From assembly GCA_009103225.1 (NCBI GenBank), contig RHPI01000671.1, positions 322,838-386,837 on the forward strand: a stretch of DNA of 64,000 nucleotides, given 5' to 3'. The stretch is from Chlorokybus atmophyticus. Taxonomy: Eukaryota > Plantae > Mesostigma and Chlorokybus algae. Made by a program: the position numbers and the translations under genes. Numbering within the stretch: position 1 is the first letter of the stretch; each line of letters opens with the position of its first letter. The notes beneath the pieces are model-generated. The model was given only the letters and a program-made list of their open reading frames with translations. It was not told where the DNA came from and did not search any database. Of the stretch, positions 4,049-63,381 are shown one piece after another.

Positions 4049-7000
4049 ATGGCTCGTGCTGCAGCCGTGTGGTCTTGCGGCCCCGCCACCCAGCGAGGCA
4101 GGTGAGAGGACAACAACAACAACAATAACAGCAACAGTATCAGCTGTCTTCATGTCTCATGATATATCACCTAGCTTTAGAGCAAAGGCACAGGCAGACA
4201 AGAAAGCAGCCCAACAGCATGACCTCAGCACAGATGATGTGGGTGAAACGCCTATGCTAGCATACCCCATCCGCAATGTGTGTCTGCATGCATTCACAAG
4301 TGTGTACCAAGCAACAGTTGCACTCCAATTCATGACCAGCACGCATGCACGTTGTGCTGTACTGTTGCAAATTCTTCGTCTCGATTCTGTCTCGGGATCG
4401 CAATGTGGCAAATACAGCCCACGTGGTTGCTTTATCTAGTGCAAGTACACCACAACTGTTCCACTAGGCCGGCGCAGCTTGACGCCCACGCGGCTTCCAA
4501 CACGCTCCTCTACGTGTGCGGCCGCACCGCTGTCCTCCTTCCCCTCCCAACAACAGCCCCAACTACAACAGCAAGAACACATGCGCCCGCACATGCGGCT
4601 CCCCTCACCGTCGCGCGCCTCTCGCCAAACGGGGAGTGGGCCGCCACCGCCGACGCACTCGGCAACGTCAAGGTGCACATTGCAGTGGTTGTTGTTGTTG
4701 TTGTTGTTGACGTTGTACTGATATTGTTTCAACTCGACAGGTGTGGGGAGTGATCAATGAGGACCATCCCGTGAAGCTCGAGTGCAGGCCGCTGAGCGGT
4801 CCCGTGCTGGATCTCGCCTGGTCTCAGGCATGTGTGTGCATGTGAGTATGTGTGTGCGTGTGTGTGACATCTACTTGGTGTGGTAGGAAAGAGCAAGCGT
4901 TGCTAATGTACTGTGTGTTGTACCTGGTGTTTGCACAGGATGGGCAGCGGATAGTTGTGTGCGGGGAGAACGCGCCTGGAGGGAAGGGCCCGCTAGTCAA
5001 ATGCTTCATGTGGGACTCTGGCAACAGGTGTGTGGGCGTGCGCGTGCGGGCATGTTAGGCAAAGTTGGATCAGACACAATTGCCACTTCACACAACCTAA
5101 CACTGCAGTGTGGGGGAGTTTGACGGGCACTCAAAAAGTGTACGCTCGTGCGATTTCCGCCCCACCCGCCCCTTCCGCATTGCAACGGGTAAGTGATAGA
5201 CACAACAAGCCAAAAGGCATACATACCGAGAGCGCGTTGTGACAAACCCAACAGCACATCACAGCACAACATCGCACCGCACCACACCAACACTAACACC
5301 CAACAGGTGGCGAGGACGGTTGCGCGAACATGTACGCCGGCCCGCCCTTCCGCTTCTCCGGCCGCCTCATCCCTCCAGACTCAGCAGCCACCACCTCCAC
5401 CAGCACCAGCACCAGCACCACCATCAACAACAGCAACAACAACAACCCCGCCATCAACTGCGTGCGCTTCAGCCCCGACGGTTCCCTACTCGCCGTGGCC
5501 GGCGCCGACGGCCGTGTGCGCATCCACAACGCCACGACGGGAGACCACACCACCAACATACACACAGACACCTCATCACCAGTCTATGCCATCTCCTGGA
5601 TGCCCTCTCGCCCGCCAACGTCATCGACAATGTTGGCGGGTGCGTGCGCGGACGGTAGCGTGAGGGTGTGGGAGCTGTCAAGAACAGGGGAGGGAGGGGA
5701 GAAGGTGGTGTTGGAAGGGAAAGAGGTGGGGAGGGGAGAGGTTGGTGCTGGTATTGGAGACATGCAGGTGAGTATTTGAGTGAGTCAGTGATGATTCAAT
5801 GAGTCAGTCAGTAAACAAGTGAACAGTCAGTTGATGCAGTGCTTCAGTGAGCTTATGTGCATGCGCATGTGCGGAAGTTTTCGCCGTCAGTGATGCCAGG
5901 CAGTGAGTGATGCAATTCGGTGCATCGCAGGTGGGTTGCGTGTGGGTAAGGGACCCGCTGCTGGTATCTCTCTCCCTCTGCGGCGACATCAACCACTTCA
6001 ACCCAACATCACTCTCACACGCACCCAACACCAACCCAGCAGTCCTCCACCCAACAACTCTCCACCGCGGCCACGCCAAAGCCATCACCGCCCTCGCCGT
6101 CTCACCCAACGCCGTCTTCTCTGCCAGCTGGGATGGCGCGATAGCAAACTGGTCAGCGTGTCCACATAACGAACACGCCTTTGGCACGCTTATACACTTC
6201 ATCAGGAGAGAAGGACCCAAAGTGTACGCGCTCGCGGTTGGACACGACGGATGTGTACACGCCTGCACCGTGGATGACAAGATGCATGTGTTTGGGAAGG
6301 GGGAGGAGCAGGGGAGGAGCGCGTGTGTAAGCGTGGGGTCGGGACCGATTGGGTTGTGCGCGGCGGGGAGACTTGTGGCGTGCGCGGTATCGGATGGTAC
6401 CGTCACGATCAGAGTTGCAAAGGCAGCGGACGGTGGTGCGGGTGGTGATGGTGATGTGGTTGTGTGGCGGAGTGGACTGAAGATCACTGCCATTGCACTC
6501 TCCCCAGGTGCCGTGAGGAATCACTTTACTTCATTAACTAGTTTGTTTTGGGGTCAACACCTGTGCTCGTCGCACTCAATCAGTTACTCGCTCAGACACA
6601 TGCACACAGACAGGCACGTGTGCATATGCCACACAGACACTCACGCTCGCGCACGTGCACACACAAACATGAAAAAGTTCAGGGGAGTCGGCCTTCAGAC
6701 ACCAACCTGTCAAACTCTTCTTTCCCTCCTGTCTACAGATGCTAGCGAGCTGGCTTTGGGCACTGACTCCGGCACCCTCCACACCTTCTCCCTCCCCTCT
6801 TCCTTACTCTCCTCCTCCTCCTCCCCCTTCTCTCCGCCTCCCCTCCACTCCCTGTCCGCTCGCCACCGCGCGGCCGTCACCTGCGCGGCGTACTGCCCAT
6901 CAAGGGCGATGATGGCCAGCGGCGACGCCGGGAGGGAGGTCGTGGTGTGGAGATGCGACACTGGAGAGGTGAGAGAGGTGTTGTGTGTGTTTGTTGTATT

Positions 7001-7293
7001 TCTGACAATGACACTTGCTCTTGTGTAAGGCCCTCCCTGTGAAGTTGGTGCACCACACTGCGCGCGTGACCTGCCTGGCGTGGTCGCCAAGCGGGTCCAC
7101 CTTGGCGACGGGGTCTCTGGACGCGAGCGTGATCGTATGGGATGTGGGTGACACGACCACCGCCGTGAAGAAGAAGGACGTCCTGAGGAACGCGCACGAG
7201 GGCGGCGTTGCGGCCGTCGGGTTCCTGAAGGAGGATCTGATCGTGAGCGGGGGACAGGACGCGTGCCTAAAGACTTGGCATGTGGATGTGTAA
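4049..7293 (+). CDS. AIP1: Actin-interacting protein 1 / WDR1 (WD40 double beta-propeller), about 10 exons
   Basis: Spliced reading: [18 protein letters not shown]; [23 protein letters not shown]; LDLAWSQ|[10 protein letters not shown]...[10 protein letters not shown]|[28 protein letters not shown]; [10 protein letters not shown]; [11 protein letters not shown]; [30 protein letters not shown]...AHEGGV...[11 protein letters not shown]; TAA at 7291-7293. The RPFRIATG and GPPFxF motifs are characteristic of AIP1. Confidence 0.92.
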
Positions 7294-36452: not shown

Positions 36453-37937
36453 TTTCTCACTTCCCTTGCGTCACAAGTTGTGTGCGAAAGTCAAGAGAGA
36501 TGACAGAAGCATGTTGGTGTGCACTACGCAACTTGACTGACGGAAACAAACAGATCAACTGCACGATGGTTTTAAAGAGGCTTAGCGGTACACGTCACAC
36601 CAACTTGATCTTGTAGATGGCTGTCACAGGTGCGCTGCTTGAAAGCCACAAGTGTGGTTGTGTGTGATAGCTTACATTATGACAGCTGACCCACAGGTGT
36701 CCGTGCTGCATGCCTTGCAAGCATTGTCGTTGACGGTGCGTGCAGTGCAAAATCACAGCTGTGGGGTTGTGTTGCGTTTCCGGCGTGGTGGACAGTCGAC
36801 TTGGAAACCGTTTACAAGTGGTTGTTTCATGATTCCATAAAACAACGTAACAGCATGTTCACATATAGCTAGCTGTTGTAGCGCCACTACCCATGCAACT
36901 CGCCTCAGTATGACTGCGTGTAAACGTTACCCCGCAGGTTGCAACCATGCACAGCTCGCGAACACCAAGCACATAAGAGCACACATCAAGAGTGCAGTAC
37001 CCAGCATTGATTACCGGACCCAAACATTCAAGTTTGCAAGCGACACACTCACCAGCACAGAAGCACACGGCGGCCGCCAAACCCTGCTTGTGTATACAGT
37101 TGCTCAGCAGCTTCGTACAGCAAAGGAAAGCACCAGCTCGCAAGCCTCGCTGCGCCCTTTTGCCGCCGACGCCGCCAGCGCTGCGGCCAGCATCACCTTC
37201 CCCCTAATGAATAATGTCCACCTCGTCGCCCACCGCCTCCCCAGCCACGACGTCAACGAGGGCGCTGACACGGACGTCACGTCACATGTCACCGCTTGAT
37301 GTCAGCGCTTTGTTGGTGGAAGCTGACAGTGTATACGTAGCAGCCGCCAAGTGTTGATGGGGACATGTGCTGTGCCTGGTGCCATCCATCCATCAGTCAG
37401 TCAGCGTGGTGAATTTGGTATTACCTCAAAGCAGTAGTTAGTTGGGGATGATTGGTGCGTCCGCCCACCCCTGCTGCTTGCATTTGAAAAGAGGGTGCCC
37501 CCCAACCAGCGCAGGTAGGTGGCTGAAGTGCTGCTGCAAGTTGAGTGCATGCACGCAACCGTGCATTGTGCATGCATGCTAGCAGCACAATGTACTTGGC
37601 TGACTCCGGCGAATTGCATTGTGCTGCTAGCATTCAGGCAACGCTGCGTCTCACACATGCACTAGGTATCCAGTATCGTCACATTTGCATACACAAGCTC
37701 AGCTGAAGCCCACATGTACACACCATCTCTGCATACAACCAGGAATTGCTAGTGATGATGCATGTGTATGTTTGCGCCAGCTCATGCACGTCGTTTTCAC
37801 AATATACGACGCTGCACCCATGAGTCTAGCAGGGCACATAGACAACAAACAGCAATAAAAAGCTTAATATCAACGCTGCAACCAACTCGATGTCTACTCA
37901 AATTGATGCATGTGGTATCTACCCCGTGTCACTTAAC

Positions 37938-40215
37938 TCACACCACGTTCAGCATTGCGTCCAGTCGCGGCGAGTCTCTAATGCGTTGGCTGACTGAGTT
38001 GGACAGTGGCTCTGTTGGCTTGTCAATGTACTGGTGCAGCTCATCAAAGCAAATTCCGTTGTTGCCAACTTGCGTCTTACCAGCCGACACGTACGTGTAG
38101 ATGGAATTGTAGGTGTCAAACCAGGAGTAGTATCAACTTGACGACTCACGCCCACGCCTTGCGCCTCGCACAGTGCGAGCATGGTGAGGGGTTAGGTGAC
38201 TTGCGCACAGTGGATGAAGATGTGTACCCAAATTCGGTGTTTGTCAAGTAACCTCCCCAGTTTTGCTTATAATAAGAGCTTTGCTCGACCCATGTGCACA
38301 AGTACAGGGGGGGCCACTCCCGTACGCGCAAGTGGTTGTTACCGTTGCACTTTGTGCCTGAAAGGCACATGTAAAGGGCAACGGTAACAACCACTTGCGA
38401 GTCGGTGTGAAGTTACACATGTCGTCTACACAATATGCCACGGTGATAGTGTTGCCATGCACGCACTGCGTATGATGTTTGGCGAGTCTGGACCATTCAA
38501 GAACTCGTACCCATCCACTTCGCGGTAGGCGTTGCTAACGACTGTTGTTGTAACGGTTCCCAGCGAAGTCTGCAGTGACAAATTTTCGCATGTGGGTGAT
38601 GACAATGGTAAGGCTTACCAACATGCATGTGGGAACTAAAGCACGCACGTTGGTGATGCCGACGTTGGTGATGCCGAACCTTCGAACTGGCTACAAAAAG
38701 GCCGTGAGTCAGTGTGGTAGTAGTAGACGAGCCTGTGGGTTCTGGGTTCAGGCGAGAGGTGTTCACCAACTCCAAGCCGTGTGTGGCTTGTGCAAGCGAC
38801 ACTGTGCCCGTAACAGCCACAACGCCATATGCAATGTACAGATGCAACTTGGCATCCACCTGCTCCACGTCGAGTGCAGATAACCGATTGTTGCATATGA
38901 CTGATCAGCCTGTAATACCACAGAAGGAAGAGGTTGTGCAGTAAAATGTGCACTACATTAAGTTCTTTCCTCACCTTGTATCCGCCATTAAGTTGCGGAT
39001 TGTTACTGGCCTGGTCTGGATAACGTTTCTGTAGCAAGGAAGGCGGTGATGTAGTTGATTCCATGGTTGAGTACGCCAACAAATGGCATTATATCGACTT
39101 CCAAACCTTCATCATAAATGCAGGGCTGTCAAAGTCCACGTGGTAAGTCGTGCTGTACGCCACGCCGGCAACGCTCACGTCCAACAAGATGTGCACAGCG
39201 AAGGGTGCGTGTTTGACAGATGCGTAGATGTGGGGATACAACAGCTTGGCCTGAAAATGGCAAGCAGGCAATGACCCCCAACCCACCCACCTTGTAGCCA
39301 CACGCCGGAAGTGATGGGATCTGCGGCTAGTGTCTGTTCCGCGGTGTTGCGCGCGCACTTCACTGGTACGTTGACGCCCGTCCACGCGCGGCCAGTCTGT
39401 GCCGACTCCCCCGTAACACGAGGTGATTGGGTAGAATTACTAACTAGTGGATGTGCATGAACTGCGGCGACGCCTTTGTGAAGGAGTGACGTGCCAGCAA
39501 CACTGTGCATGACGGTGTTGGAAGTGGTGTGGAGGGCGCAGGCCTTGTCACGTACCACTCCTGCGTTCGAGTGAAGGTGCAGAGGTAAAGACAACCTAGC
39601 ATAGGCCCTAGTGCTGAGCATCAGAGACTTGTGTACTACCTACTAGTAGTAGCAGCAGCACGTGCTGATGCTGGTCACCACAGTGGAGTGGTAGCATCAG
39701 CACGGTGCAGCACGCTCCGACCTTGTTTATCAGCAGCATTGTAGTATTGCTAAGTTGACAGCTACGACAGCTGCAACGATGACGATAACGATCGCACAAC
39801 AGTCTTGACAACAACAGCTGCAGTCCTTGCAGCAACAGCAACAGCAACGTGGCGGTGGCCGTTGCTGATGGCTGTTGTGGTTGTTCCTACAACCACAACA
39901 GCCACCGTTACCACCACAACAGCAACCAACACAGAAGTAAAGAGAAACAGCGACACCATGTCCAACCTGAGCAACAGCTGCAACAACAACAACAACAGCA
40001 ACGGCAACGACAACAGCAGGACTGCACTGAAGGACCTGTGGCCTGGCACTAATACACGCCTTCTGGAATGTTGGGTCCGTGTCAGGGTTGGGCCACGCAT
40101 CGGTGTTGCAGGGGGTCTCGCCTTCAGCCATCGCCTGTGTTGCAGAAGCCGCCAGAAGCAGCAGCAGCGAACACCACAACGAGACGACGACCTGGCCGCT
40201 TGCACGCTTTGCCAT
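37938..40215 (-). pseudogene. Multi-exon predicted secreted protein, paralog A (probably disrupted)
   Basis: Signal-peptide-like exon MAKRASGQVVVSLWCSLLLLLAASATQA...NTDAWPNPD. Later exons: EWYVTRPAPSTPLP, HAPFAVHIL, GLELVNTS, YREVDGYEFLNGPD, EQSSYYK, YTYVSAGKTQ. An ~10-nt insertion relative to paralog B creates TAG at 39444-39446. Function unknown. Confidence 0.55.
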
Positions 40216-44645: not shown

Positions 44646-44841
44646 NNNNNNNNNNNNNNNNNNNNNNNNNNNNNNNNNNNNNNNNNNNNNNNNNNNNNNN
44701 NNNNNNNNNNNNNNNNNNNNNNNNNNNNNNNNNNNNNNNNNNNNNNNNNNNNNNNNNNNNNNNNNNNNNNNNNNNNNNNNNNNNNNNNNNNNNNNNNNNN
44801 NNNNNNNNNNNNNNNNNNNNNNNNNNNNNNNNNNNNNNNNN
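44646..44841. other. Assembly gap (N run) between poly-A and (CT)n
   Basis: N bases. Confidence 1.
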
Positions 44842-47020: not shown

Positions 47021-47607
47021 NNNNNNNNNNNNNNNNNNNNNNNNNNNNNNNNNNNNNNNNNNNNNNNNNNNNNNNNNNNNNNNNNNNNNNNNNNNNNNNN
47101 NNNNNNNNNNNNNNNNNNNNNNNNNNNNNNNNNNNNNNNNNNNNNNNNNNNNNNNNNNNNNNNNNNNNNNNNNNNNNNNNNNNNNNNNNNNNNNNNNNNN
47201 NNNNNNNNNNNNNNNNNNNNNNNNNNNNNNNNNNNNNNNNNNNNNNNNNNNNNNNNNNNNNNNNNNNNNNNNNNNNNNNNNNNNNNNNNNNNNNNNNNNN
47301 NNNNNNNNNNNNNNNNNNNNNNNNNNNNNNNNNNNNNNNNNNNNNNNNNNNNNNNNNNNNNNNNNNNNNNNNNNNNNNNNNNNNNNNNNNNNNNNNNNNN
47401 NNNNNNNNNNNNNNNNNNNNNNNNNNNNNNNNNNNNNNNNNNNNNNNNNNNNNNNNNNNNNNNNNNNNNNNNNNNNNNNNNNNNNNNNNNNNNNNNNNNN
47501 NNNNNNNNNNNNNNNNNNNNNNNNNNNNNNNNNNNNNNNNNNNNNNNNNNNNNNNNNNNNNNNNNNNNNNNNNNNNNNNNNNNNNNNNNNNNNNNNNNNN
47601 NNNNNNN
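47021..47607. other. Assembly gap (N run) after (GT)n
   Basis: N bases. Confidence 1.
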
Positions 47608-50099: not shown

Positions 50100-50680
50100 G
50101 CAACAAGGTCGTAACATGAAGTGGATGGGTACAAAGTCTTAAACGGTCCTGACACTTACCCAACATCATATGTGGTGCGTGCATGGCAGTGTCAATAGCA
50201 TGACATTGGCAAGGTTGCATAGGCAACTTAGAAATGTTGTTAAACAAAATGCAACCCGGTTTACATGTGCCTCCAAAGTACAAAATGCAACTGACAATTA
50301 CTTGCGCATACGGCAGCTGCCCCCCTCCCCCCCCCCCCTCTCGCGTACACTCCATTTAGTATGTACACGTGGGCCGAGCAAAGCTTTTATTATAAGGGAA
50401 AACGAGAGAGGACATGTGCCAAACAACAACTTGGCGTACTCATTTTTAATCAAGATGAGTACAGAGAGTTGTTGTTTGCAACACACCTTATATGACGATG
50501 CTCGCGATGTATAAGGCACAAGCTGTGCGTCTGAGCATGTCACGTTCTTATTACTCATAATTTGACACATACACTTCCAACTACACGTACGTGTCGGCTG
50601 GTAAAACGCAAACCGGCAGCAACAGAACCTGCCATAAAAAGCTGTACAAGTACATTGACAAGCCAACAGTGAGCTAATGC
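50100..50680 (+). pseudogene. Paralog C fragment (3' exons) of the secreted-protein family
   Basis: HEVDGYKVLNGPD preceded by TAA 50112-50114 where A has TAC; EQSFYYK; YTYVSAGKTQ...KYIDKPT. Colinear and inverted relative to paralog A. Confidence 0.65.
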
Positions 50681-51091
50681 AAAACTGGCAGCAACTCGGC
50701 GCTAATGCTAACGATGGTGAATTGAGTGACACATTACTAGTAAATGCTCGTGCAGCGTTCTCAGTACTCAGTATTCAGAACTAGCAGTTCTTGGTTGTCC
50801 CTGTGCTTGGCTAGCCATCATGAGTGCCACAGGTCCATGCAGTACAATGGTGCGAATAAGCTTCAGCTATTTGTATATGCATATGTGATGGTAATACTTC
50901 TTAATGCATGCGCTGGTTGCTAGTACGGTGCCTTGGCCAAATTCGCCAAGTACACACTGTGCTGCCAGCAGTGCTAGCATGCATGCACATAACATGCAGC
51001 AACACTTCAGCTAGCTTCGTGCCTCCCTCGTTCGCCCGAATGCAAGCCGGGGTTGCACATGCACATAAGCCAGCTCAACTCGCTCCTTCAA

Positions 51092-51135
51092 CAGTCGCGA
51101 CGCCAATGGGTCTTGGCTCTGCAAAAGCTTATGCC
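51092..51135 (+). repeat. Left terminal inverted repeat of the Academ-like element
   Basis: cagtcgcgacgccaatgggtcttggct...gcttatgccg matches the reverse complement of 62244-62276 (18 of the first 19 nt, then gcttatgccg after an indel). Confidence 0.8.
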
Positions 51136-53077
51136 GGCCCGGTCAGGGCTGAGCACTGTTGAATGGCTGTCAGCAGCTGTCGGGCTGCACTGGGCGGTGT
51201 AGATACTCGTTTGATCATGAGTCGCATTGGTTCGAGGATCGACGTTGATGTGGTTGTCAAGACTACTGCTTTCGACAGCGATGCACAAGGTTCCAGCGCT
51301 GACGGATCAGTGTCGACTGAGCTTGTGTTGTTGTCGGTTTAGGGTTGTAATGCCCTGTTGAGTCAACGCATTGAGACGTCTGAGTGTTGTCGTGCACCGT
51401 TTGCTGTCTATGCTGCGACGGTGGTCTATGTGGTTAAAGGGCTGATGACGCGGCGGTGGCGTGTCGTGTTGCAGCGTCTGAATAGCGGATGTATGGGTAT
51501 TTCCCGCGCAACGGGCGGTGTGGTTGTAGGTGGGTGGGGTTGCTGTAGGCGGTGAGTGTGCTCACCCTGGGGTGGCTGTGGAAGACTGGCGGAATGTCGG
51601 CTGACGGCGGAGCTGGCTTGGATGGAATCGCCGGCGTCACATTTTCGTTGTGTGCTACTTTGCCGTTTATCAGGCGCACTCAGTCTTTTTATCAAACAGC
51701 GTATGAGCAGGTGAGCAGGTGATTCTAGGACATTGTGTTGGCGATGTATCTGTTATGTAACTTGATGTATTCTGTGTAGTTGATGTTGTGTTCAATTGTA
51801 TGCATGCTGTAGGTGTCAATTGGGTGGCCGGTGCATGTAGCTGGATCTTCCAGGGGTCCTGAACAGGGTGTGAGGGAGCTTCATGTGGAGTTGCCTGGGG
51901 GTTTTGGCTTCAGATTTAGCTTGCATCGTGTGCGGCAGGGGCTTGCTGGCTTCCCCACGCGATTGGCTAGTGACCTGTTAGTTGTCGAGCATGTGGTTGG
52001 CAGCGTGTCTCTTGCACGCTGGGTGATTGGTACTGAGTGTGATATGGATCTTGGGCGACGGCGTCACTGGGTTGAGCAGTGGCACGACACGGAGTGGCTA
52101 CCATTCGAGGTGGGTCAGTGGAGCCTGCATCCACTGCAGGGCGGCGATGCAGGTGATGATGACAACCCGGGCTTAGCACACACCCCCCCTCCCGTCGAGG
52201 GTGGTGGCTGGCATCCCGTCATGCCTGCCGTATCAGGTGCCTTGTTGTCTGAGTTGTAGTCTATGGGAATATCATAGCATTCTGCAGATAAATCTAACCG
52301 CCATATGTGTTTTGTCGGTGTTCGTGTGGCATTAGCTGTTGCACACAGTTCAGTGTAACTGTGTGCGCGTAGTCGCCACTCTAAGTACATGTTCAAAGTC
52401 AAGTGATATGCATGATGAGGGGGTTGGATTAATGTTTGGTTTGTGTCGTGTGTAGGGCCTGCTGATGTTGGTGCGGCACAGTGAAACTGGTGAGCGTGCC
52501 TCTGTCGCATAGTTGTTTGAATGGCACAGTAGGTGCATGGCATTGCAGTATGGTCAACTGATAGTGTTATTGGTGCTGGTGCAGATCTTGGCGACGTACC
52601 ATCTGGCGCATGTCTCCAACAATGCAGTCGTGGCTGTGTAGGAGTGTAGGGTGTGCAGGTCGTCTGTAGGCACACATGGCAGTGCTGAGAATGTGTGTGT
52701 GTGTGTGTGGGCACGTAGTTCAGCATGTGCAGGCAGCCATACTCAGGACACTATGGGTGGGGCATTCTTGTGACTGAATGTGCTGCAAAGAGCTGTCTAT
52801 TGATGTCTGTTGTAACAATGAGTCAAGTATGCAATTCAACATGTAGGACTGTAGTGTCTAGTGCACGTGCAATATGGGTGAGGTGCGGGCTGGTTGACTG
52901 CGTCAACATTGGAAACAGTGATGTTGAATGATCAGACTTTAATGCTATAACAGAGCATGTTGTACAAGTATCAATGACGGCGTCACATGAGTGTCACTGC
53001 ATGCCCAAGCGTATGTTCATAAGGTATGCGAACAGCACCACACGAAGCATTGTTTGCAACAATGGCTGTGGTATGAT

Positions 53078-54980
53078 TTATGCTGACCATGAAATGGGAG
53101 GTCCGCTTGGTGTGTACCCCAAGGCCAACAACAGCTGCCTGCCTACATACTCTGAATAGGCCGGAGGGATGCTCTCCACCAACGCACACTCGTCCGTAAT
53201 CCAATCAATGCCGAGCGCCATGCTCCACCCACTGACCTTGCCTCTAGAGGCTGCCTGCCCATACACGGGATGCATCTGTTGCATGTCCGATACAGCCTCC
53301 TGTCGTACGCAGTCCTTTGTTGACTTGCTACTCTGACAGTGTCTAGATAGAGCACCTAAGTGCTTATCAGTATGGTCGCAGTGCATGTCCACAGACAGAA
53401 GAGGATGCGTCTCGAATACCCTGTGACGGAAGGTGGAGAGGGAGAACACGGTGCCGCATAACACCATGGTCGCATTCATGTAGGTTCGTGCATCAGGAAT
53501 GTTCTCTATGACGAAGCACTTGCCACTGTTTAGTAGCCGTGTGCGCACGTCGTGAAGGACGGTGCTATGGTTCCACGTGGCGGAGTGTTGTGTGCGCTGC
53601 GATTCTGGTATGCAGCGTGCGAAGGCCTGGCAGGGCGGGCTGGCCCATATGACATCGTAGTCTGCCAGGTCCACCAACAAGGCATCACCTTTGACAAATG
53701 TGAACGGGTACTGTGGCTGCTCATTGATATCAACCCCCGTGATGTCGAAGCTAACGCGATAAAGGCCCATGCTGGCGCCTCCACCACCACAGCACAAGTC
53801 CAGCAGTTTGAGGCGATGAGGTTCTCCGTTAGGCCGGCGCGGTGATTGTGTCAACAGAAGTGGGGATGACTGACTCCACAACGACATCATGCGCAAGGGT
53901 GGATTCACCTTGCGATTGGTTTGCACTCTGCTACCGCCTATGCGTACACACATTGAGTCTGTGTACTGTGTCTCAACAACCACAACAATGTTGTGTTTGT
54001 CAATGACCAGCAGCTGTACATCACCATCTTCGAACCGGACTCTGTGTCTGCCTGCAGTCAGCCCATGGTTGAGTGGTGCTGCTTGCTGAATCGCAGATAA
54101 GCATAAGTGCACAGGGAGCGGCATGTGTACAGGTGTGCAAGCACTGACCAAGTCTGTTGTTGTGGGCGTAGATGACACCCTTGTACCATGATTTGTCAAG
54201 CGGCCAGTAGACCATGACCGTGCAACCTATCAACGTCGAGCCTCCCTGCTGGCAGCGCTGATGCAACGTCTGCAGGTTATCACAGGTTGCAGCAGCTACC
54301 TGTCGAAACAGCATGTTGTCATAAAGGAGACGCATGCATGAGTGTTCCTGTTTCTACCACTGTCAAGCATGAGCGCATACACACTGCGTGTCACACACGC
54401 GGAACAGTGCGTACATTGACGTGCAGGAATCAGCACGCGTACCTCGTGCCGAGTGTTGTTCGCGCGCAAAGGTTGCGCAAGTGACGGCGGCGCCACCTCG
54501 CCGCGTCCGCATCGAGCGCGTTGTTGCTGTTACGTGTCGTGTGTAAGTTACAGACACGAACGGTGGACCACTTTGCATACTACGCACAGTCAGCACATCA
54601 GACTACTGGTGATAGTGTCTCACCGGTGAGACGTGAACGGCCTGACCAGATGACACCGTGCCGGGGCGTGCATACGGCATGTAGCGAATGGGCACACCTT
54701 GCCACTCAAATGGCGCACACGCACATTCAGTGCATGTGCACTGCTGTTGGAAGAACTTGGGCAGTATGCACTTGTGCTTGGAGCGGCAGTCAATCATGTG
54801 TAGTCCAGCAACGTGATAGTGCCAGCAAGCAGCGGTGAACCCATATAGGGCCAGATACCTTGTGCATTCGCTCTCATGACGGCTCATTCTGGATCGCTGA
54901 CCATTGGTAACGACATAGGCATGGCAAACAGAGCAAACTAGTGCTTTCTTGAGCGGTGCACCCGCCATGGTGATCGTCAT
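53078..54980 (-). CDS. Tudor-domain / C5-cytosine DNA methyltransferase fusion (phage/actinobacterial Dcm-like catalytic domain)
   Basis: Tudor is split by a phase-1 GT-AG intron: LIGCTVMVYWPLDKSWYKGVIYAHNNRLG|RHRVRFEDGDVQLL. The catalytic domain (~53813-53078) is uninterrupted: motif I LLDLCCGGGGASMG, GVDINEQPQYPF, GDAL, motif IV ASPPCQ, motif VI VIENI, LCG..F, motif VIII RHRVFE, ALGIDW, motif X ESIPPAYSEYVGRQL. The 5' exons (Cys-rich, from 54980) are less certain. Confidence 0.88.
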
Positions 54981-55343
54981 ACTCTCACCCGCCTGTGCAT
55001 AGCCGCTGTGGGTGCTACGGCCGAGTGGAGATTAACCCTAAAGTTGTGAGGTCAACCCTAAAAGTATGTGTCGCCCAGTAAAGCGCTGTATCAGCGGTGT
55101 GGCATATAGGTGGCGGCGATGTCCTGGTGGGCGGCGGCGGCGGCGGAAGCCTCAGCGACTTGGACACGTTGTGATGGTTTGCATGTCTCCAGTAGTGGTG
55201 GATGATACTTGTGTTGCAAGCCCAGTCAGCGCTGAGTGAGGTGTGGGTCGCAGCATGGCGCCGGCCCATGCAGGCGTTCTCTGTTGTTGTGGGAGGCGTA
55301 GCCATACTGGTGAGTACGGAGCAGTAAGGCATTGGTGTGGTAG

Positions 55344-58300
55344 CTAGATGTCGTCCATGTCCATGTTGGTCAAGTCTTCGACGTCGCTGTCTGAGTTGTC
55401 TGTGTCTTCCCAAGCCCAGGCTTCTGGCATTTGAACACCCGGGTCTGCGTGCATGCTGTTTGATGGTGGTTGAGTACCACCAACTGGCGTTGTTGCATCC
55501 TCAGAGTGGGCTCCATGGTTTTCGCAGCCAAGGCAAGAACAGCTTTGTGTGCATTCCTCGCCAGCTTTCTTGCACTTGCACCTTCGGGTGTTGCACCTGT
55601 TTGCCTTGCAGCCGCATCCACGCATGAGTAGATGGCGCCTAGACTTTGCAGCCGCCATGTTTTCCTGAAGGTCATGCACTGCATACCACACGCCGTCCAC
55701 TTGATGGTAACCATACTCATCCAGTTCTGGCAGATGCATGTCCGAAGTGCAGCTTTGCATCCACATGTTGACCGCGTAAACAGCGCATAGTGCATGCAGC
55801 CATAATGCATCGACTGTTGGGATGCTGTCGCGTGGTGTTGCAGTTGTATTCCACACTGTCTTGTGTATTGCCTCTAGCCAGTCCGACAAGTACACCTTGT
55901 CGCAGGTGGTAGCACCTGCACCGTGCAGCTCAAAGTACAAGGAAGCCGGTGTTCCGCTGTCGAATGATGAACGGTGCTTCTCAAAGTAAGCACATCCGAT
56001 GAGGCGCAGAACAAAGAAGCACATCTCGTGCTCTTCAGTAGTTACACCGCCAGTGATGAATGATGCATGCTGTGCCAACACCGTCCTCGATATGAACTGC
56101 TTCGTTATGCCACCAATGAAGGATGTATACTCACACCCTGTTGCGGCGTACACCAACAGCAGCAGCCAGCCACGCCGCGTTTCTGAGATGCTGTTAAGCT
56201 GATGCATGCTGCGTACATGCAGCTGCAGCTTCGTCAAGCTGACAAACGGTGGGCGCGATCCCGCACGGGAATGCTGAGCAACCTGTACCGTAACTTCCTT
56301 GAAGGACATGTCCAGAGTCTCGCTCATTGCGAGACCAATCATGGTGACATCGGTGTCCGGCGAGAAGATCATCACCCTGTTGTAAGGTGAGTTTTGTGCA
56401 TGAACCCACACGCGTGAATCTGCCTCGCCATGATTGCACATGTAGTCCTCAACATCCATGACAGAGACGTCGTTGCTGCTGCTGCGCGCCACCACACGTG
56501 CATGGTCCCCAACACCGTCCATGTCAGACCCACCAGCCAGCACCAGCTCCTGTTCTGGTCTCAAGTGCAGCGCCACCATGGCTGGCAAGTGCTCAGTAAT
56601 AAGCTGACATAATGATCTTTTCAGGCTGCGATCTTTTAACACATCACGCCATGACTTAGGCAACTCAGTCTCCAAAGTGAGTCGACTGCCAGAAGAAGCC
56701 TCAATTCCGTCACGAGCGCGCTGCAGAGAAGATTTCACCCCTGACTGCAGTCGAGGTGTGTCGAACACAACATGAACGCTCTGGACACTGGGGTTGGCGA
56801 GTCTGTTGACTACACTGGTACGCATTAGGTGTTCAATGTAGTCCTTGATGGTGCCTTGCGCCAAGTGGCACTCTTGGTTAATCAGGAACATGCCCTCCAG
56901 CACGACACATTGCACGCCTGCAGGAGCTGTATGCGACCAGCAGTCTGTGTCATGGGGAGCTATCTCTGCTAAGAACTTGGCCTTGTCTCCAGATCTCATC
57001 TTGCCAGTAAGCTCATCAAATACAGCCCACCGGTGCTCGCAATAACGCGCCATGACCGTCTCATGGTCAGCTCCTGTCGACGCCAGCCGTTTGGCAACCA
57101 ACATCTGCTCGCGGTACTGTTTGAGGACTGTTGCTTGCTTGGTTGTGCGCTTCTTAGCAGGAGCCATGGTGTGGAGGTTGAACCTGCGATTGACTTTGCA
57201 TGCCTGCTCCTCGTTGTAGATGTCCACCTTAACAAAGTTTGTCATCGCCTCCACACCTACTAAGTACTGCCTTGCTAAATTTGCTGATGCGGCAGCTGAA
57301 GCGGGGACACCACTGGTCAGGTGCGTCAGGTATGGTTGAGGTGGCCTCTGCAATGCCCGCGTGTTAATGAGAACTTCCTGCATATGCCTGATGTCACTCC
57401 CACAGTGTGACGCATCTGCGCAGATGACACGGAGCACCCTACTGGCATCATCGTCAGCGTCAGCATCCATGTCAGTAATCCCAGGTGCGTTGTCTAGAAG
57501 CAGCTGCCGTCCTAGTTGCTTCTGTGTGTGACTGCGTTCCCCAAGGTACTGCGACTTCTGTCGCAGCTGCTGCGTTGTGGGATTGCACAGAGACATCTTC
57601 ATGTCTCTGTTTACCTGACACTCGTGCGCCTCATCCAGCGCAACCATCCTGCCTGGTGTACCAGTCAAGCTGATGGCAAAACCCCCATCCGCCAACATGT
57701 CCAGCAGAGATGGAGGCATGACTTGCAGTTCCGCAAGGTGCAGCGTCATCACACGTTGGTAATTGAAGCGATCCCATGCAAATGACAGTGGGCTAAGGCC
57801 CTTCCAGCTTGCCAGCCTCAGGTGCCAGATAAACGCGAACAGAACAAGAAGAGTGCCAGGTAATTAAACATGTCTCTGTTGATGAAGTTCCACCACAAGT
57901 CCCATGTAGCATCCTCCTTTGCCTTCTGCTCACAGAATATTTCAAAGAACTTGCGTGCTGTTGTTGCCATGACTCCATGCAGTCTCAAGTCCTCATCACA
58001 CTGTTCCTTTATGTTGGGAGCTTCATGCCTCCACCAAATGTCATGCATGTGCCTGTACAAAGCCTCCCACACTTTGCACAGGAAGTTGTAGATGCGCTTC
58101 CAATGAGAGCCGTCCAGTAGATGGTTGCGAAATGTTGAGGCTGAGAAGCCACCCTCCACTGCCATCGCATCCATGCCAGCGTCCAAGTAAATCTTCATCG
58201 ACACAGGCTGTGTGTTCATCAACACATGAAAGTCGCCAGGAATAGGCACAACCCAGTCCCAATACCCGGGCTCTGCTCTCTTGAGGGCTACCATGAGGGC

Positions 58301-61300
58301 AAATGTCTTTTGATCTCCCGTTACACATATCTTGCTGTCGGTGTCACTCAACATCACCTTGTTCTTCAATTGCAGCAACGCAATCTTCAAGTTATCAATC
58401 TTGTTGGGACAGAATGGCAGTACTGGCAGGTACTCAATGTCATTCACCACGGGCGGAGGCTCATCATTGGCTATTTGCAGATATCTCGCCCAATCATCCT
58501 TGAGAGGAGGTAAGGATGCCTGCTGCTCTTGTCGCATCCTGAACAGCACAGTGTTGTGCATGGTAACACGGAATGACTCCATAGCGCTCTTCTCTGACGG
58601 CTGCAGATTGAGCATTGGCCCGCTGCGCACTGACACAGGTACCCTCTGGCGTGGTGGTGATGGTGGCATGGACTCAGCCACTGGCTCAGGAATGAGTGCC
58701 TCCGACAGCGTGCGGTTACGTGTTGGCTGCAACAGCACATGCAGGTTAACGTAGCAGTAGTTCAAGACAGTTTAGGAGTTAGAACATGCGGTGCACACAG
58801 CTGTATACATCCACCACAACTGCGCATCAGAAGAGCTCACCTCCAACTCCAGCCGAGCGGACACTTCGCGCCCAGCTATTGAGGTGAGCTGCGTAGATGT
58901 TGCATGTATATCCCCAGTAGTCCTGCCTTTGTACTTTGCTTGATGACCAGCTCGGACGTCCAGGTTGTCGATGGATGCCAGCACATGCCTCCCCGGACCT
59001 GGCTGCAAACGTGCCATCGAGTCCAGGTTATGCGTTGCACGGCGGTGTATATGACGGTCCATGTGACTCCTGCTGGAAGTCACTCCAATGCGATTCAACG
59101 TCTTGATCAACTTGTTGCCCTTACTCAGCATATCAACCGTGTTCGTGATGACCATGTGCACCGGCGACAATGCCCACTTACTACGTGCGTAAATTGCAGA
59201 ATGCATCAAGTACAGGGTCTTGTTACGCAGGATTGCCAAAGAACGTGCATGCCTTGGCCCTGGAGTCTTCACCCGCTCCAGCGCATTGAATCCAGTCAAG
59301 GCGCCAAACACTTTTCTCAACGCCACACCGGAAGCTTCCCACTCCTGCTGCCAGTCCACGAACCGCAGATCATGATTCACTTTGTTGCGCTCTACCATGC
59401 GACGCCGCTCCGCTTCCATGAGATGACTCAGAGTACGCAACAATTTCACGGGAACTTCTTGTGCATCATCATCCACCACACCGGGACCCTTGGACTGCGT
59501 TTATGCAGGCACATCCGTCACCTTCATTGCATGCCGCAATAGACACGCCCATGGGTCTGCCCAAGCTGCTATCAACAGCGTTCCGTGCTGCCTGGCCCGG
59601 TGACAGGTACCACGGCACCTGGCATTCTCGACTGAACCGCACGCACCAGCACCATTGCTTGCCTAATGTTGAACTGTGCCGCCACAGCGGTCAATAGTAC
59701 CACAGCATCCCGTTGCAGCAGCTGCACCGCCACCTCTTTCACAGCACGTGAGAGATCATCTGTCGCTTCCTCTTCCGCAGCTGCGCGCACAACATCCTCA
59801 TACAAGTGGCGAACCTCTTCAGCCACTCTAGCTTCATAAGCTGATTGATTTGTGTGCCTGCTGCTTCGCAAAGTATCGCGCAGGCCTGCCACCACATCCT
59901 CCAACTCCACCAGCTTACAACGGTACCCATCCCGCTCATGTTCCGCCGCCTTGGCAGACTGCCTCTCCAAGTTAGACTGGTCGATCTCTTCCTGCACCCT
60001 CGCCTCCAAGACCTGAGGTAGATATCAATCAGGACTGCTGAGCACTGTTGGTTGCATATGCGTTTTCATCTACACAAGTACACCGCACTGCTGAACGTAC
60101 CTGTGCTTGTTGCTGCAGGTTATCAACCTCCTCCTGCAACTCCTCCAAAGCCTTATCAGTCTCACGTCTCTGTGCTTCAAAATCAGACTCCTTGCGCCTG
60201 AGCAGGTCCTTGCCTTCCTACATCAGCCATCAGATTACACCCAGCCCTGGGCATCAGCCAGGTAGCTATGACGGAACTTACATGGCACTATGAACAACGC
60301 ATCAGCTGCCATGCTCTACATCACACTCACCTCCCATTGCGCGTGCCAGTGCGTCGCCTCTCGCTGCGCACGCAGCAAGGCTTCGTTGTCAGCAGGCACC
60401 GCAGGAGCTGCGTGACATTGTTGCGCAGCAACCATGTCAGCCAACTGCTTCGCCACGTGCTCTCTATCCGCACAAACAGTGTCCAGCTCGGAGGACAAGC
60501 GCTGCACCTCCCTCCGCAAGCACTATGCAGAGTATAACACTATCATTAGGATAAGGTGCAGCCCATCTGAACCAGCTAGGCATGACTGTGTGTCAATCCT
60601 GTACAACATGCCATATGCCTTCTATGTCACACACGGCACACATGCATGACACAGTCCCTGCATACTATCCTATACACTCATCATTTACTTGTAATTGTTA
60701 CAGCCCACACTACAACAACCATAGCAAGTTACACATGTCAGACTTCAGTGCCAGCAGGGTGTACCTCAAGTTGGCTGAACACTCGGGTCTGCCTACACGT
60801 CTGCTCAAATTGCACAGCCTCAGAGTCCACACCCTCGTTGCTCTTAGGTTCTGCACACGCCACACCATAACAATAAAGCACTGCCAGCTGAAAGCCTCAC
60901 ATTATCCAGTTACATCCAATACAATGTCACTACCAGCTACATTATGGATTGCCCAAGAGATAAGCCGAGCAAACTATGTAATCACAGGCACGCACGTCTG
61001 CTGACTAATGACTTCGCCCACCTGGCTGATTACCAGCCGGGGTTTTAGGAGTTTTATGCACATTCTTGTTGGAAGAATGCATCCGCTGCAATGTAGACCC
61101 CAGCAACACACGATTCCCGTTCTGATCGACTCGAGCAAGCGGGTTGTGCTGCGGGTGAAGAGCCTGGGCTGAAGACACTTGCTGTTGAACCGCCGCATTG
61201 TACTGCTTCTGGCGCTTTGACATCTGCGATGAGAAAGGCGCCACGTTTTCTTCGTCATCATCCTCCGATTCAGAGGGATCGAGGTCGACGTCACCTCCTT

Positions 61301-61840
61301 GCCAGGCACCAATATCTGCTAAGGTTGCACAGCACATTACTCATCGACATACACACCATACATCACACCGCCTGTCAATGGTACCTGCGTTAGCTGGCCA
61401 ACTGGAGTGGCCGCCGGCTCGCGCTGTACATGTGCACATTCCTGATGACACAAGATACAGAGTCAGCAAACAGCGCACGCACCAGAACACACACACACAC
61501 ATTGGTACACAATGCAAGGTACTGCATGAAAGCAACCAGCACGTGTCATCAAACAACTCACCGTGCACTTGGGTTGGATGACCAGGTCGTCTCCGTCCCA
61601 ACACCATGTACGACCCAAAACCAAAGCAGCAAAGAACACACTGGTGGTGTTCATACGAGACTTCTGCAGATTCAAGTCCCACTTCAGCTTGTTGACATAC
61701 ACCTTGTCTTCTTTGCGACGACGCTTGGCATAATCCCGCTGGTTGTCACAGCGCTCCCTTCTTTGTTTGTCGAATGCCTCCAACCGCTGCCGCTGCTGCT
61801 CGACTAGACTGACAATCGCCTCCTCACCATCCTCAGCCAT
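55344..61840 (-). CDS. Academ-like transposase polyprotein (N-terminal coiled coil, DDE core, XPG/PIN-like nuclease, C-terminal CXC finger), with one frameshift at ~57820-57865
   Basis: LIKTLNRIGVTSS; ASIDNLD..G..HAT; VTGDQKTF..WVVPIPGDFHVLM; WHLRL...FAWDRFNYQR..LHL; ALDEAHECQVNRDMK; VLEGMFL; VVFD; CNHGEADSR; SPDTDV; ATGCEYTSFIGGITK; PTVDALWLHA; GCGCKANRCNTRRCKCKKAGEECTQSCSCLGCEN. Exons above 59.5 kb are inferred and could be a separate gene. Confidence 0.75.
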
Positions 61841-62243
61841 CACCGCCGCCGCCGCCGCACCGCAACACTGAATGCAACCCCGCCCTGTGCACAAATTTTG
61901 AATGCACACACCGTTGACCTACGCCGATATAACGGATACAAACAGGGCTGTACAACCATAAATCCACGTCGTGCTAGATATACAACGCGAGGCGTAACGG
62001 AGACGAAATAGCTAGAATTACGTCGTCATACACATCGACACAACACCCAAGGCTGATCGACAGCCGTTAGAACTCGTCAGTCGGCGCACCAACAGCGCCG
62101 CTCAACATCGCTGAACACACCGAACGCGACGCATCAGATCAGTGTTTGGTCAGAGTCGTTCACACTCTGTTCGCCTCATTTCACAGGTGTTCTACGTCGC
62201 GAGGCTCGATCGCGGCCGTCCGTCTACTGCAATCGTAGCATAG

Positions 62244-62276
62244 CGGCATAAGCAAAAACCCATTAGCGTCGCGACT
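62244..62276 (-). repeat. Right terminal inverted repeat of the Academ-like element
   Basis: cggcataagcaaaaacccattagcgtcgcgact. Confidence 0.8.
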
Positions 62277-63381
62277 CAAGTGATACCGCCAGTACAACGC
62301 TGACTGCTAGGACTTTTGTTTTGTTTCTTGTTTCCTTGTTGTTCCGATATTAGAACCCAGCCTGTTCCGCTGCTCAGCGGAGACAACAGCGCGCACGAGA
62401 GAAAACACCGACACCACACCTTGACGGCTGCCACGTCACACTCATCGGCGCTCTGTCCCAGAAACTGCTGACATCCGTGACACGTGACTTAACGGCCGTG
62501 TCAGCGCCCTCGTGGACGTCGTCGCCGGGGGTGTGGGCGATGGTCAGCAAGACGGGGAGAGGGTATTAGCTAGACACTGTGTTAGCCAGTGCTGGCGGCG
62601 GCGGCGGCGAGGAGGGCGCAGAGAGAGTCTTGCGAGCTGGTGATCTTTCTCCACCTAACTGGACTGCTGAGCAGCGCATGCACAAGCAGGGTTTGGCAAC
62701 CGCCGCGTGCGCCTCTGAGCTGGTGAGTGTGTCCGCTTGCGATTTGTGTGTTCCAGGTTGCAAATGCTGTACTGCATTCTCGATGTTCGCTGCCATGTGC
62801 TCGGTGTTCAGAGCTGTGCATTTGTGTGTGCATGCAACCTGCGGGGTTCAGGTAACATGTATAGCGCAGTCAACCTGAGGCGAACTTGCACGCGTGGCGG
62901 CGCTGCGAGAGCACTATCTATCTGTGCACATGTTGATAGGAATCATGGCAGTCAACAACGGCCTGACGGTTCAACAAATGCCGCCCACCACGCCAAACAA
63001 CCCAACACAACCCCACAGTTGTGTACACTGCACATGGAGCGCAACATGCACCATAGGGCATCGGCTCTCCTGTCATTGACATTGCAAGGCATGCAACATG
63101 TAGCGTGTGCACCTGTAAGCCAATTCAGGTGTCATCACATAAGCCAATACACGCGTTTGCACACACGTATGACTTCTGATCAGCACGCCTGTAACAGCCA
63201 CGTGCAACATCAAGTTGGTGTAATATTCAGTCCAGAGCAAAACAATGTGCAGTTGGCCTGTGCATTTCTGCAATACACAATCTGTTTGCTCGGTGCACAA
63301 GATCATGCTGTTATTTCATCACCAGTGGTTACATCTCTTCAGTCCAACAACCTGTGACACAAGGGAAAGAAAACCGTCGCA

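Follow-up and report, generated by a model that had tools for sequence, protein, structure and literature searches.

The locus described here raises the question of whether a DNA transposon can carry its own chromatin-guided DNA methyltransferase. It lies in a stretch of 64,000 nucleotides from the alga Chlorokybus atmophyticus (assembly GCA_009103225.1, contig RHPI01000671.1, positions 322,838 to 386,837 of the forward strand), which we call the window and in whose own numbering positions are given below. Inside this window, a transposon bounded by terminal inverted repeats (TIRs) harbours an intact-looking gene for a protein in which a Tudor domain is fused to a C5 cytosine methyltransferase. 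With slightly more confidence than doubt, we read it as the cargo gene of an AcademX-like cut-and-paste transposon, encoding a Tudor-guided C5 methyltransferase of viral type.

An intact-looking gene that joins a Tudor domain to a methyltransferase

On the minus strand, an open reading frame (ORF) of 373 amino acids spans positions 53078-54199, and its last 254 residues (53081-53842) form the uninterrupted domain of a C5 cytosine DNA methyltransferase whose target-recognition region is small, identified through its homologues, alignment, AlphaFold2 and Foldseek. The motifs of the domain follow one another without a stop codon in the order DLCCGGGG (motif I), YPF, SPPCQ (motif IV), ENI (motif VI), RHRVFE (motif VIII), MALGIDW (motif IX) and ESIPPAY (motif X), the codon of the catalytic cysteine of motif IV occupying 53630-53632. 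An earlier note on this DNA had described an intron-free catalytic domain with all main motifs of C5 methyltransferases, and this description was confirmed, as in a family alignment of 38 sequences the window protein retained 15 of the 15 invariant columns. A protein database search returned 1370 matches, with a best E value of 5e-54, and a search of representatives at 50% identity returned 3637 (best E 1.7e-64). The AlphaFold2 model computed from the family alignment reached a predicted local distance difference test score (pLDDT) of 85.5 over the methyltransferase and a predicted template modelling score of 0.85. When this model was compared with the PDB by Foldseek, all 50 of the top 50 matches were C5 DNA methyltransferases, at E values of about 1e-6 to 1e-7; they include DNMT3A/B, DNMT1, MET1, M.HaeIII, Dnmt2 and a prophage enzyme, and the catalytic domains of DNMT3A/B, with their small target-recognition region, lead the list. 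The modelled fold is that of a class I methyltransferase with the catalytic loop of C5 enzymes. By its motifs, its fold and its invariant residues, the C5 methyltransferase is intact-looking.

Two motif residues are unusual. In motif I a cysteine replaces the phenylalanine, a change that the earlier note had suspected of affecting the binding of S-adenosylmethionine (SAM). Comparison with the family weakened this concern, since the residue is Phe in 329, Tyr in 23 and Cys in 19 of the 372 relatives whose motif I could be identified, and a cysteine that disables SAM binding was rejected on that ground. The ENI of motif VI is also a minority state, found in 14 of 423 relatives, ENV being the usual wording.

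Ahead of the enzyme lies a Tudor domain of the RDM15/PDS5C/MSH6 type (53969-54245 on the minus strand, intron included), the pieces of which sit in two ORFs, VYWPLDKSWYKG in ORF 54021-54335 and RFEDGD in the methyltransferase ORF. The former ends in LIGCTVMVYWPLDKSWYKGVIYAHNNRL, the N-terminal half of the domain, and the C-terminal half, RHRVRFEDGDVQLLVID, stands well ahead of the enzyme in the latter. Removal of a 97-nucleotide GT..AG intron (54052-54148 on the minus strand, phase 1, beginning with GTCAGT and ending with TGCAG) joins the two halves into a domain of 61 amino acids, which matched PDB entry 7DE9 with an E value of 1.4e-9 over 49 residues (query residues 2-50), at about 47% identity and with no gap over the splice junction. 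This gapless match bears out the proposal of an intron-split Tudor-like domain with cage-type W/Y/F/D residues. The spliced domain also gave weak matches to nine Tudor-type Pfam families, several of them crossing the junction, and the unspliced exon-2 ORF matched the Pfam family Tudor_KDM3B at E 9e-4.

Entry 7DE9 is the Tudor domain of Arabidopsis RDM15 bound to histone H3 monomethylated at lysine 4 (H3K4me1) (PMC8184781). When the alignment was read against that report, the RDM15 cage residues Trp616, Tyr623 and Tyr641 corresponded to W, Y and F in the window Tudor, and Asp643 and Asp645, which select for the mono-methyl state, were both retained. The H3R2-contacting Glu647 is replaced by Gln, and Q654 lies beyond the aligned stretch. 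Judged by these residues, the window Tudor appears to be of the plant-type RDM15/PDS5C/MSH6 kind, and may share the specificity for H3K4me1.

We assembled the gene as a three-exon model, in which 493 amino acids in one frame make up a Cys/His module, the Tudor domain, a linker and the methyltransferase, all on the minus strand. Predicted exon 1 (54624-54980) is a Cys/His-rich open frame of 119 codons beginning with an ATG and ending at a phase-0 donor, CCG/GTGAGA. Predicted exon 2 (54149-54299) holds a linker and the Tudor domain's N-terminal half, its acceptor CAG/GTA being in phase 0 with exon 1 and its donor TTG/GTCAGT in phase 1. Exon 3 (53078-54051) is a single uninterrupted frame that completes the Tudor domain with its C-terminal half and continues, after a linker of some 70 amino acids, through the methyltransferase to the stop codon. 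What follows the intron, half of the Tudor domain and the entire methyltransferase, therefore shares one exon and one frame, so that the fusion itself is independent of splicing and only the integrity of the Tudor domain needs the splice; were the intron retained, the frame of exon 2 would run into a stop at 54021. The in-frame fusion claimed by the earlier note is thus upheld, and its upper end of the gene, at 54310, is not: that position is neither a splice acceptor, exon 2 starting at 54299, nor a start codon. The module encoded by exon 1 has the pattern C-x2-C-x15-H-x3-C followed by a second Cys/His cluster, and it found no family or structure match in Pfam, the PDB or the atlas; inclusion of this exon is where the gene model is weakest.

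Two plant-telomere-like or telo-box-like motifs, TAACCCTAAA at 55033-55042 and CAACCCTAAAA at 55053-55063, stand some 53-83 nucleotides upstream of the predicted ATG, and may be promoter elements. Another ORF of 373 amino acids in the window (5907-7028), considered as a second copy of the gene, was rejected since its sequence is unrelated.

Relatives and likely source of the enzyme

By sequence, the window enzyme had no affinity to DNMT1, DNMT3, CMT, DRM, DNMT4, DNMT5, DNMT6 or DNMT2, and its nearest 3637 proteins were all of one short type. A sequence search of the PDB yielded DNMT2/tRNA methyltransferases as the only family matches, at E values of 0.14-0.15, in support of the earlier placement of the enzyme outside the canonical eukaryotic DNMT families. 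The broad family to which it belongs consists of short enzymes of about 200-240 amino acids, whose phage and bacterial members are 35-43% identical to it over about 90% of the domain. They comprise 312 phage records at about 35% identity, mostly from phages of Mycobacterium, Streptomyces, Gordonia and Arthrobacter, together with IMG/VR contigs and 474 bacterial loci from many bacterial phyla (35-43% identity).

The wording of this short subfamily, namely YPF, RHRxFE, AMGIDW and IPPAY within about 200-250 amino acids and with a minimal target-recognition region, is present in the window enzyme. The short C5 methyltransferases of phages and prophages, such as gene 113 of Mycobacterium phage Kalah2 and gene 8 of Streptomyces phage Muntaha, are annotated as "DNA methyltransferase", and they resemble the window enzyme in the motifs DLFCGxGG, YPF, SPPCQ, ENV, RHRxFE, AMGIDW and AIPPAY and in their tiny target-recognition region. 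Unlike the window protein, however, they are single-domain and intronless and have no reader module.

Closer relatives were found elsewhere. The highest scores, at 45-50% identity, belong to P0121 (48%), P0001/L001, P0125, P0132 and P0163, all of which bear a methyl-CpG-binding domain (MBD; PF01429, best E 2.8e-8) between motifs VIII and IX. The members of this viral clade share with the window enzyme an N-terminus of the form P.G..RR..LDLFCG, the segment after motif IV, the motifs CxH..K.LG and PVYG, and the tail GYT..Y.P. They differ in the MBD itself, whereas the window protein has an N-terminal Tudor domain, a Cys/His module, introns and a transposon as its home. A Pfam search found no MBD in the window protein, whose motifs VIII and IX are separated by about 40 residues only; in the alignment, it is about 60-100 residues shorter there than P0121 and P0125. 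Tudor-fused relatives were likewise absent, as no representative matched before residue 84 of a query that contained only the part of the Tudor domain encoded downstream of the intron.

The contigs that carry these relatives have a viral look. L001 encodes a D5 primase-helicase, a PLOD-type glycosyltransferase and an MIP channel, and on L005 the genes, among them an mRNA capping enzyme and UCH proteases, are tightly packed. In a second viral clade, P0136 lies on a 245-kb contig with PolB and an intein-bearing Rpb1, and P0143 adjoins the gene of a cap N7-methyltransferase. On L002, the contig of the closest relative, the neighbouring genes are orphans and so carry no signal of origin.

We then built a maximum-likelihood tree of 67 rows, unrooted and made without rows for eukaryotic DNMTs. 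In this tree the window protein joined the MBD clade with a support of 91/94, and the window protein, the MBD clade and the second viral clade were together separated from the 57 bacterial and phage rows with a support of 93/95. Among 431 sequences searched, only the window protein and four different proteins of the MBD clade end in the tail G[YW]T..[YG].P; the four account for eight entries, since L001-L004 recur as P0001, P0121, P0125 and P0132. Four further short signatures were nearly as exclusive. Although likelihood alone leaves the exact branch unsettled, these rare signatures decide in favour of placing the window enzyme, by its sequence, with the MBD-bearing giant-virus-like clade. 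Since the nearest relatives are that clade, on giant-virus-like contigs, a giant virus of algae seems a likelier source of the enzyme than an actinophage, and a specifically actinophage-derived enzyme was rejected on the best matches and the position in the tree. The "phage-type" label of the earlier note therefore holds for the broad short family of phages and bacteria, at 35-43% identity, but not for the nearest relatives, which are giant-virus-like, MBD-bearing and 45-50% identical. In the course of this history, the reader module seems to have been switched from an MBD to a Tudor domain.

The MBD-bearing short C5 methyltransferases themselves lie at L001:2874-3716, L002:2028-3050, L003:447-1616, L004:30-1043 and L005:6806-7819, and are compact reader-writers of methylated CpG (mCpG); within our incomplete search of the literature, we found no description of MBD-containing viral DNMTs. 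In three other relatives, P0122 (453 amino acids), P0124 (447 amino acids) and P0129 (377 amino acids), two complete short C5 methyltransferase domains are fused head-to-tail, and P0129 looks circularly shifted or truncated.

The carrier transposon

The gene lies in an 11.2-kb DNA transposon (51093-62276), AcademX-like, both genes of which are on the minus strand, and which was delimited by its bounding inverted repeats and by a paralogous site that lacks it. The left TIR (51093-51118, plus strand) is 26 nucleotides long and 88% complementary to the right one (62251-62276, minus strand), and this pair is the longest inverted repeat of the region 50.5-63 kb. In the whole window, a 19-nucleotide core of the TIR occurs at the two ends of the element only, while none of 100 shuffles gave two matches. 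The element is flanked by CAAC and CAAG, three of the four bases being identical, in one copy and with a diverged paralogue for comparison, which makes them a candidate 4-bp target-site duplication. A diverged paralogous insertion site without the element, or "empty site", was found at 37250-37600 on the minus strand, where the two flanks, once joined, can be aligned across the junction (about 37428) with 67% identity overall. Because the paralogue is continuous across the junction, the 11.2 kb behaves as one repeat-bounded insertion, and the earlier claim that the gene lies between TIRs proved correct, the 26-nucleotide repeats standing exactly at the edges of the insertion. A second copy of the element was absent from the window, where it matched only itself.

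The flanks of the element (50540-51092 and 62277-62830) form a diverged inverted duplicate of 36940-38150, 67-81% identical and 13 kb away, and the host site is probably another repeat or a segmental duplication.

Upstream of the cargo gene lies the transposase gene (55344-59479, minus strand), with at least three long open exons at 58772-59479, 57818-58765 and 55344-57752; further upstream exons probably reach about 61900. Its product, recognised by DUF6589, CXC and a homologue, P0267, consists of a DDE-like part, a putative nuclease part of XPG/FEN1-like wording and a C-terminal CXC domain. The DDE-like part gave a weak match to Pfam DUF6589 (E 3.4e-5), with DUF6589 clusters of the atlas scoring 0.94-0.95, and the C-terminus matched the Pfam TCR/CXC family at E 4e-4. 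The nuclease part has FEN1/XPG-like wording (VVLEGMFLI, VHVVFD.P.R, GEADSRVWVHA and FSPDTDV). It had no Pfam match and no PDB match, whether searched as a single sequence or as a profile of three sequences; the atlas leads for it were XPG, Pox_G5 and 5'-3' exonuclease families with scores of only 0.77-0.82, and its AlphaFold model, with a pLDDT of 45.5, was too low for use. Two homologues of the transposase were found. One of them, P0267 (1093 amino acids, from a 5.5-kb contig of another organism), joins a DDE-like part of the PGDWH type and a nuclease-like part in one polypeptide, which supports a single multi-exon transposase gene here. AcademX elements are described as combining a transposase with an XPG-type nuclease and as making target-site duplications of 3-4 bp (PMC10045372). 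Since a layout of transposase and putative nuclease would match this description, the label AcademX-like is reasonable, and we regard it as plausible.

The cargo gene begins 360 nucleotides downstream of the transposase stop, in the same direction, and its GC content at third codon positions (GC3) is 0.62 as compared with 0.60 for the transposase. The remainder of the element, that is, about 2 kb at the left end (51119-53077) and 59500-62250, contains open frames with no recognisable domains; an ORF at 59572-60009 looks like a coiled coil.

Over the whole window, the observed/expected ratio is 0.78 for CpG and about 1.5 for TpG and CpA, and within the element the corresponding values are 0.72, 1.57 and 1.61. 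This low CpG with an excess of TpG and CpA fits long-term deamination of methylated cytosines without proving it, and (TG)n tracts contribute to these values. Runs of N, either gaps or masked stretches, occupy 44646-44841 and 47021-47607, and the overlapping long ORFs on both strands around them, at 46.2-48.8 kb, suggest low-complexity or repeat sequence.

How the fusion may act and what it would mean

If the protein works as its domains suggest, the cage of the Tudor domain would dock on monomethylated H3K4 tails, and docking would tether the enzyme to nucleosomes with H3K4me1 and away from promoters with trimethylated H3K4 (H3K4me3). In Chlamydomonas, about 80% of H3 bears H3K4me1, a mark associated there with silent chromatin; the paper itself doubts that this is general (PMC3664811). 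Such tethering would hold the enzyme on the bulk of inactive chromatin. Once tethered, the enzyme would methylate cytosines nearby at C5, with SAM as the methyl donor and Cys71 of SPPCQ as the catalytic residue. The target context would probably contain CpG, as expected from the nearest relatives, which hold a reader of mCpG inside the enzyme. For the element, the gain could be portable de novo silencing or camouflage as already-silenced DNA, self-limitation, or interference with the host; the self-regulation and the protection from the element's own nuclease that the earlier note put forward may be further gains. The fullest version of this scenario is an active, self-contained reader-writer on a cut-and-paste transposon, in which a viral methyltransferase lost its MBD, gained an H3K4me1-binding Tudor domain and introns, and deposits 5-methylcytosine on marked host chromatin. 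It would be the first histone-guided DNA methyltransferase borne by a DNA transposon; this version is tentative, and we hold it to be possible rather than probable.

Several points weigh against a Tudor-guided viral-type enzyme as transposon cargo. The site without the element is a paralogue of 67% identity rather than an allele, and the two copies of the candidate target-site duplication differ at one base. Splicing, exon 1 and expression are predictions made from the DNA. The match to Pfam PF00145 covers the N-terminal half of the domain only, with an E value of 8e-4 and 19.3 bits against a cut-off of 22; many close relatives of the window methyltransferase pass this cut-off, from which we conclude that the Pfam model represents the short subfamily poorly. 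In the AlphaFold2 model, confidence is low from motif VIII to motif IX, at a pLDDT of 47-72. Methylation of cytosines in DNA is the activity that the motifs and the modelled fold suggest, and we know of no member of the short family with a biochemical test. As Glu647 of RDM15 is replaced by Gln, the mark recognised by the window Tudor may differ from H3K4me1. An approximately unbiased test was also compatible with the window protein outside both viral clades (p 0.61), and with this test indecisive the assignment to a clade rests partly on the exclusive sequence signatures. Finally, because the trees are unrooted, we infer the direction of transfer and the donor.

Three other explanations were weighed against these data. 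The first sees in the gene an intact-looking passenger that is functionally dead or decaying, the relic of a giant-virus gene taken up by transposons. It draws on the window protein having the longest terminal branch of its clade (0.94) and on the minority residues in motifs I and VI, but both of these residues occur in intact prokaryotic relatives. Moreover, 493 codons have stayed open over three in-phase exons, the invariant residues and the catalytic cysteine have been kept, and so have the residues of the Tudor cage, and we judge a dead passenger to be unlikely.

Secondly, the cassette of Cys/His module, Tudor domain and methyltransferase might be an independent unit, either a mobile element of its own or a host gene, that became nested or trapped between the TIRs. 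In its favour, the stretch of about 2 kb between the stop of the gene and the left TIR (51119-53077) is devoid of recognisable content. However, the cassette is not enclosed within the element by any further pair of repeats, inverted or direct; it lies 360 nucleotides downstream of the transposase, in the same direction and with matching GC3; and all 11.2 kb are missing together from the paralogous site, so that we consider a nested cassette improbable. Lastly, that the enzyme is not chromatin-guided on DNA at all, acting on RNA or tRNA like DNMT2 or serving only for protection from the nuclease, with the Tudor-like fold put to another use, strikes us as very improbable: the sole PDB sequence matches are indeed DNMT2/tRNA methyltransferases, and no member of the short family is characterised to our knowledge, but the relatives reside in phage, prophage and giant-virus genomes and are annotated as DNA methyltransferases, the closest of them bear an mCpG-binding domain that is sensible only for a DNA enzyme, the structural matches include DNA-bound DNMT3, DNMT1 and M.HaeIII, and the Tudor domain matches a proven histone reader.

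Transposon cargo encoding a Tudor-guided methyltransferase, the explanation that we favour, has partial counterparts in known systems. Parasite-carried cytosine methyltransferases are usually read as tampering with, or hiding behind, host silencing. One DNMT survey names such enzymes on DIRS and other retroelements of algae and on dinoflagellate SymbioLINEs, as well as virus-derived "orphan" DNMTs in eukaryotes (de Mendoza et al. 2018, Sarre et al. 2024, as summarised in PMC12344493). These resemble the window gene in being cytosine methyltransferases that a genomic parasite or virus has brought into a eukaryotic genome, but the known carriers are retrotransposons or endogenous giant viruses and not cut-and-paste elements with TIRs, and none of them is described as having a Tudor fusion. 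The same survey gives as its criterion for a DNMT a PF00145 match with E < 1e-4, at which the window protein, with its E value of 8e-4, would fail.

A base-modifying enzyme that travels with a cut-and-paste transposon has a precedent of another kind. Iyer et al. in 2014 reportedly linked TET/JBP genes to KDZ transposons in basidiomycetes, and there too the transposase has CXC-type Cys-rich domains. TET/JBP enzymes, however, are oxidases of 5-methylcytosine and not writers of it, the transposon belongs to another superfamily, and a histone reader is absent. On the side of the reader, plants and algae possess fusions of the MSH6-Tudor and PDS5C-Tudor kinds, MSH6-Tudor being found in green algae; the Tudor domains of RDM15 and MSH6 sit on cohesin-regulator or mismatch-repair proteins, whereas that of the window sits on a methyltransferase. 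Animal DNMT3A/B would be alike in logic, combining histone readers (PWWP/ADD) with a de novo catalytic domain that has a small target-recognition region. They are also the best structural matches, with a template modelling score of about 0.55, yet the window enzyme does not share their ancestry, being 10-12% identical to them, with different readers and no match at the level of sequence. Diatom DNMT5b proteins bear Tudor domains as well, in a family that differs from the window enzyme (PMC9998398). In the literature, of which our coverage was incomplete, we found neither a DNMT borne by a DNA transposon nor a fusion of an RDM15-type Tudor domain with a short methyltransferase.

If the favoured reading is true, it would add the cut-and-paste DNA transposon to the carriers of methyltransferases, with a directly testable rule of targeting given by the fusion to a histone reader from a class with proven H3K4me1 recognition. 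It would also offer a traceable history, leading from a viral enzyme with an internal mCpG reader to a transposon enzyme with a histone reader, and would show how readers are swapped on one writer. At about 250 amino acids, the enzyme could, if active, be a compact programmable methylation domain. As the window protein falls below the Pfam thresholds used by surveys of DNMTs, the class to which it belongs may have been overlooked in eukaryotic genomes.

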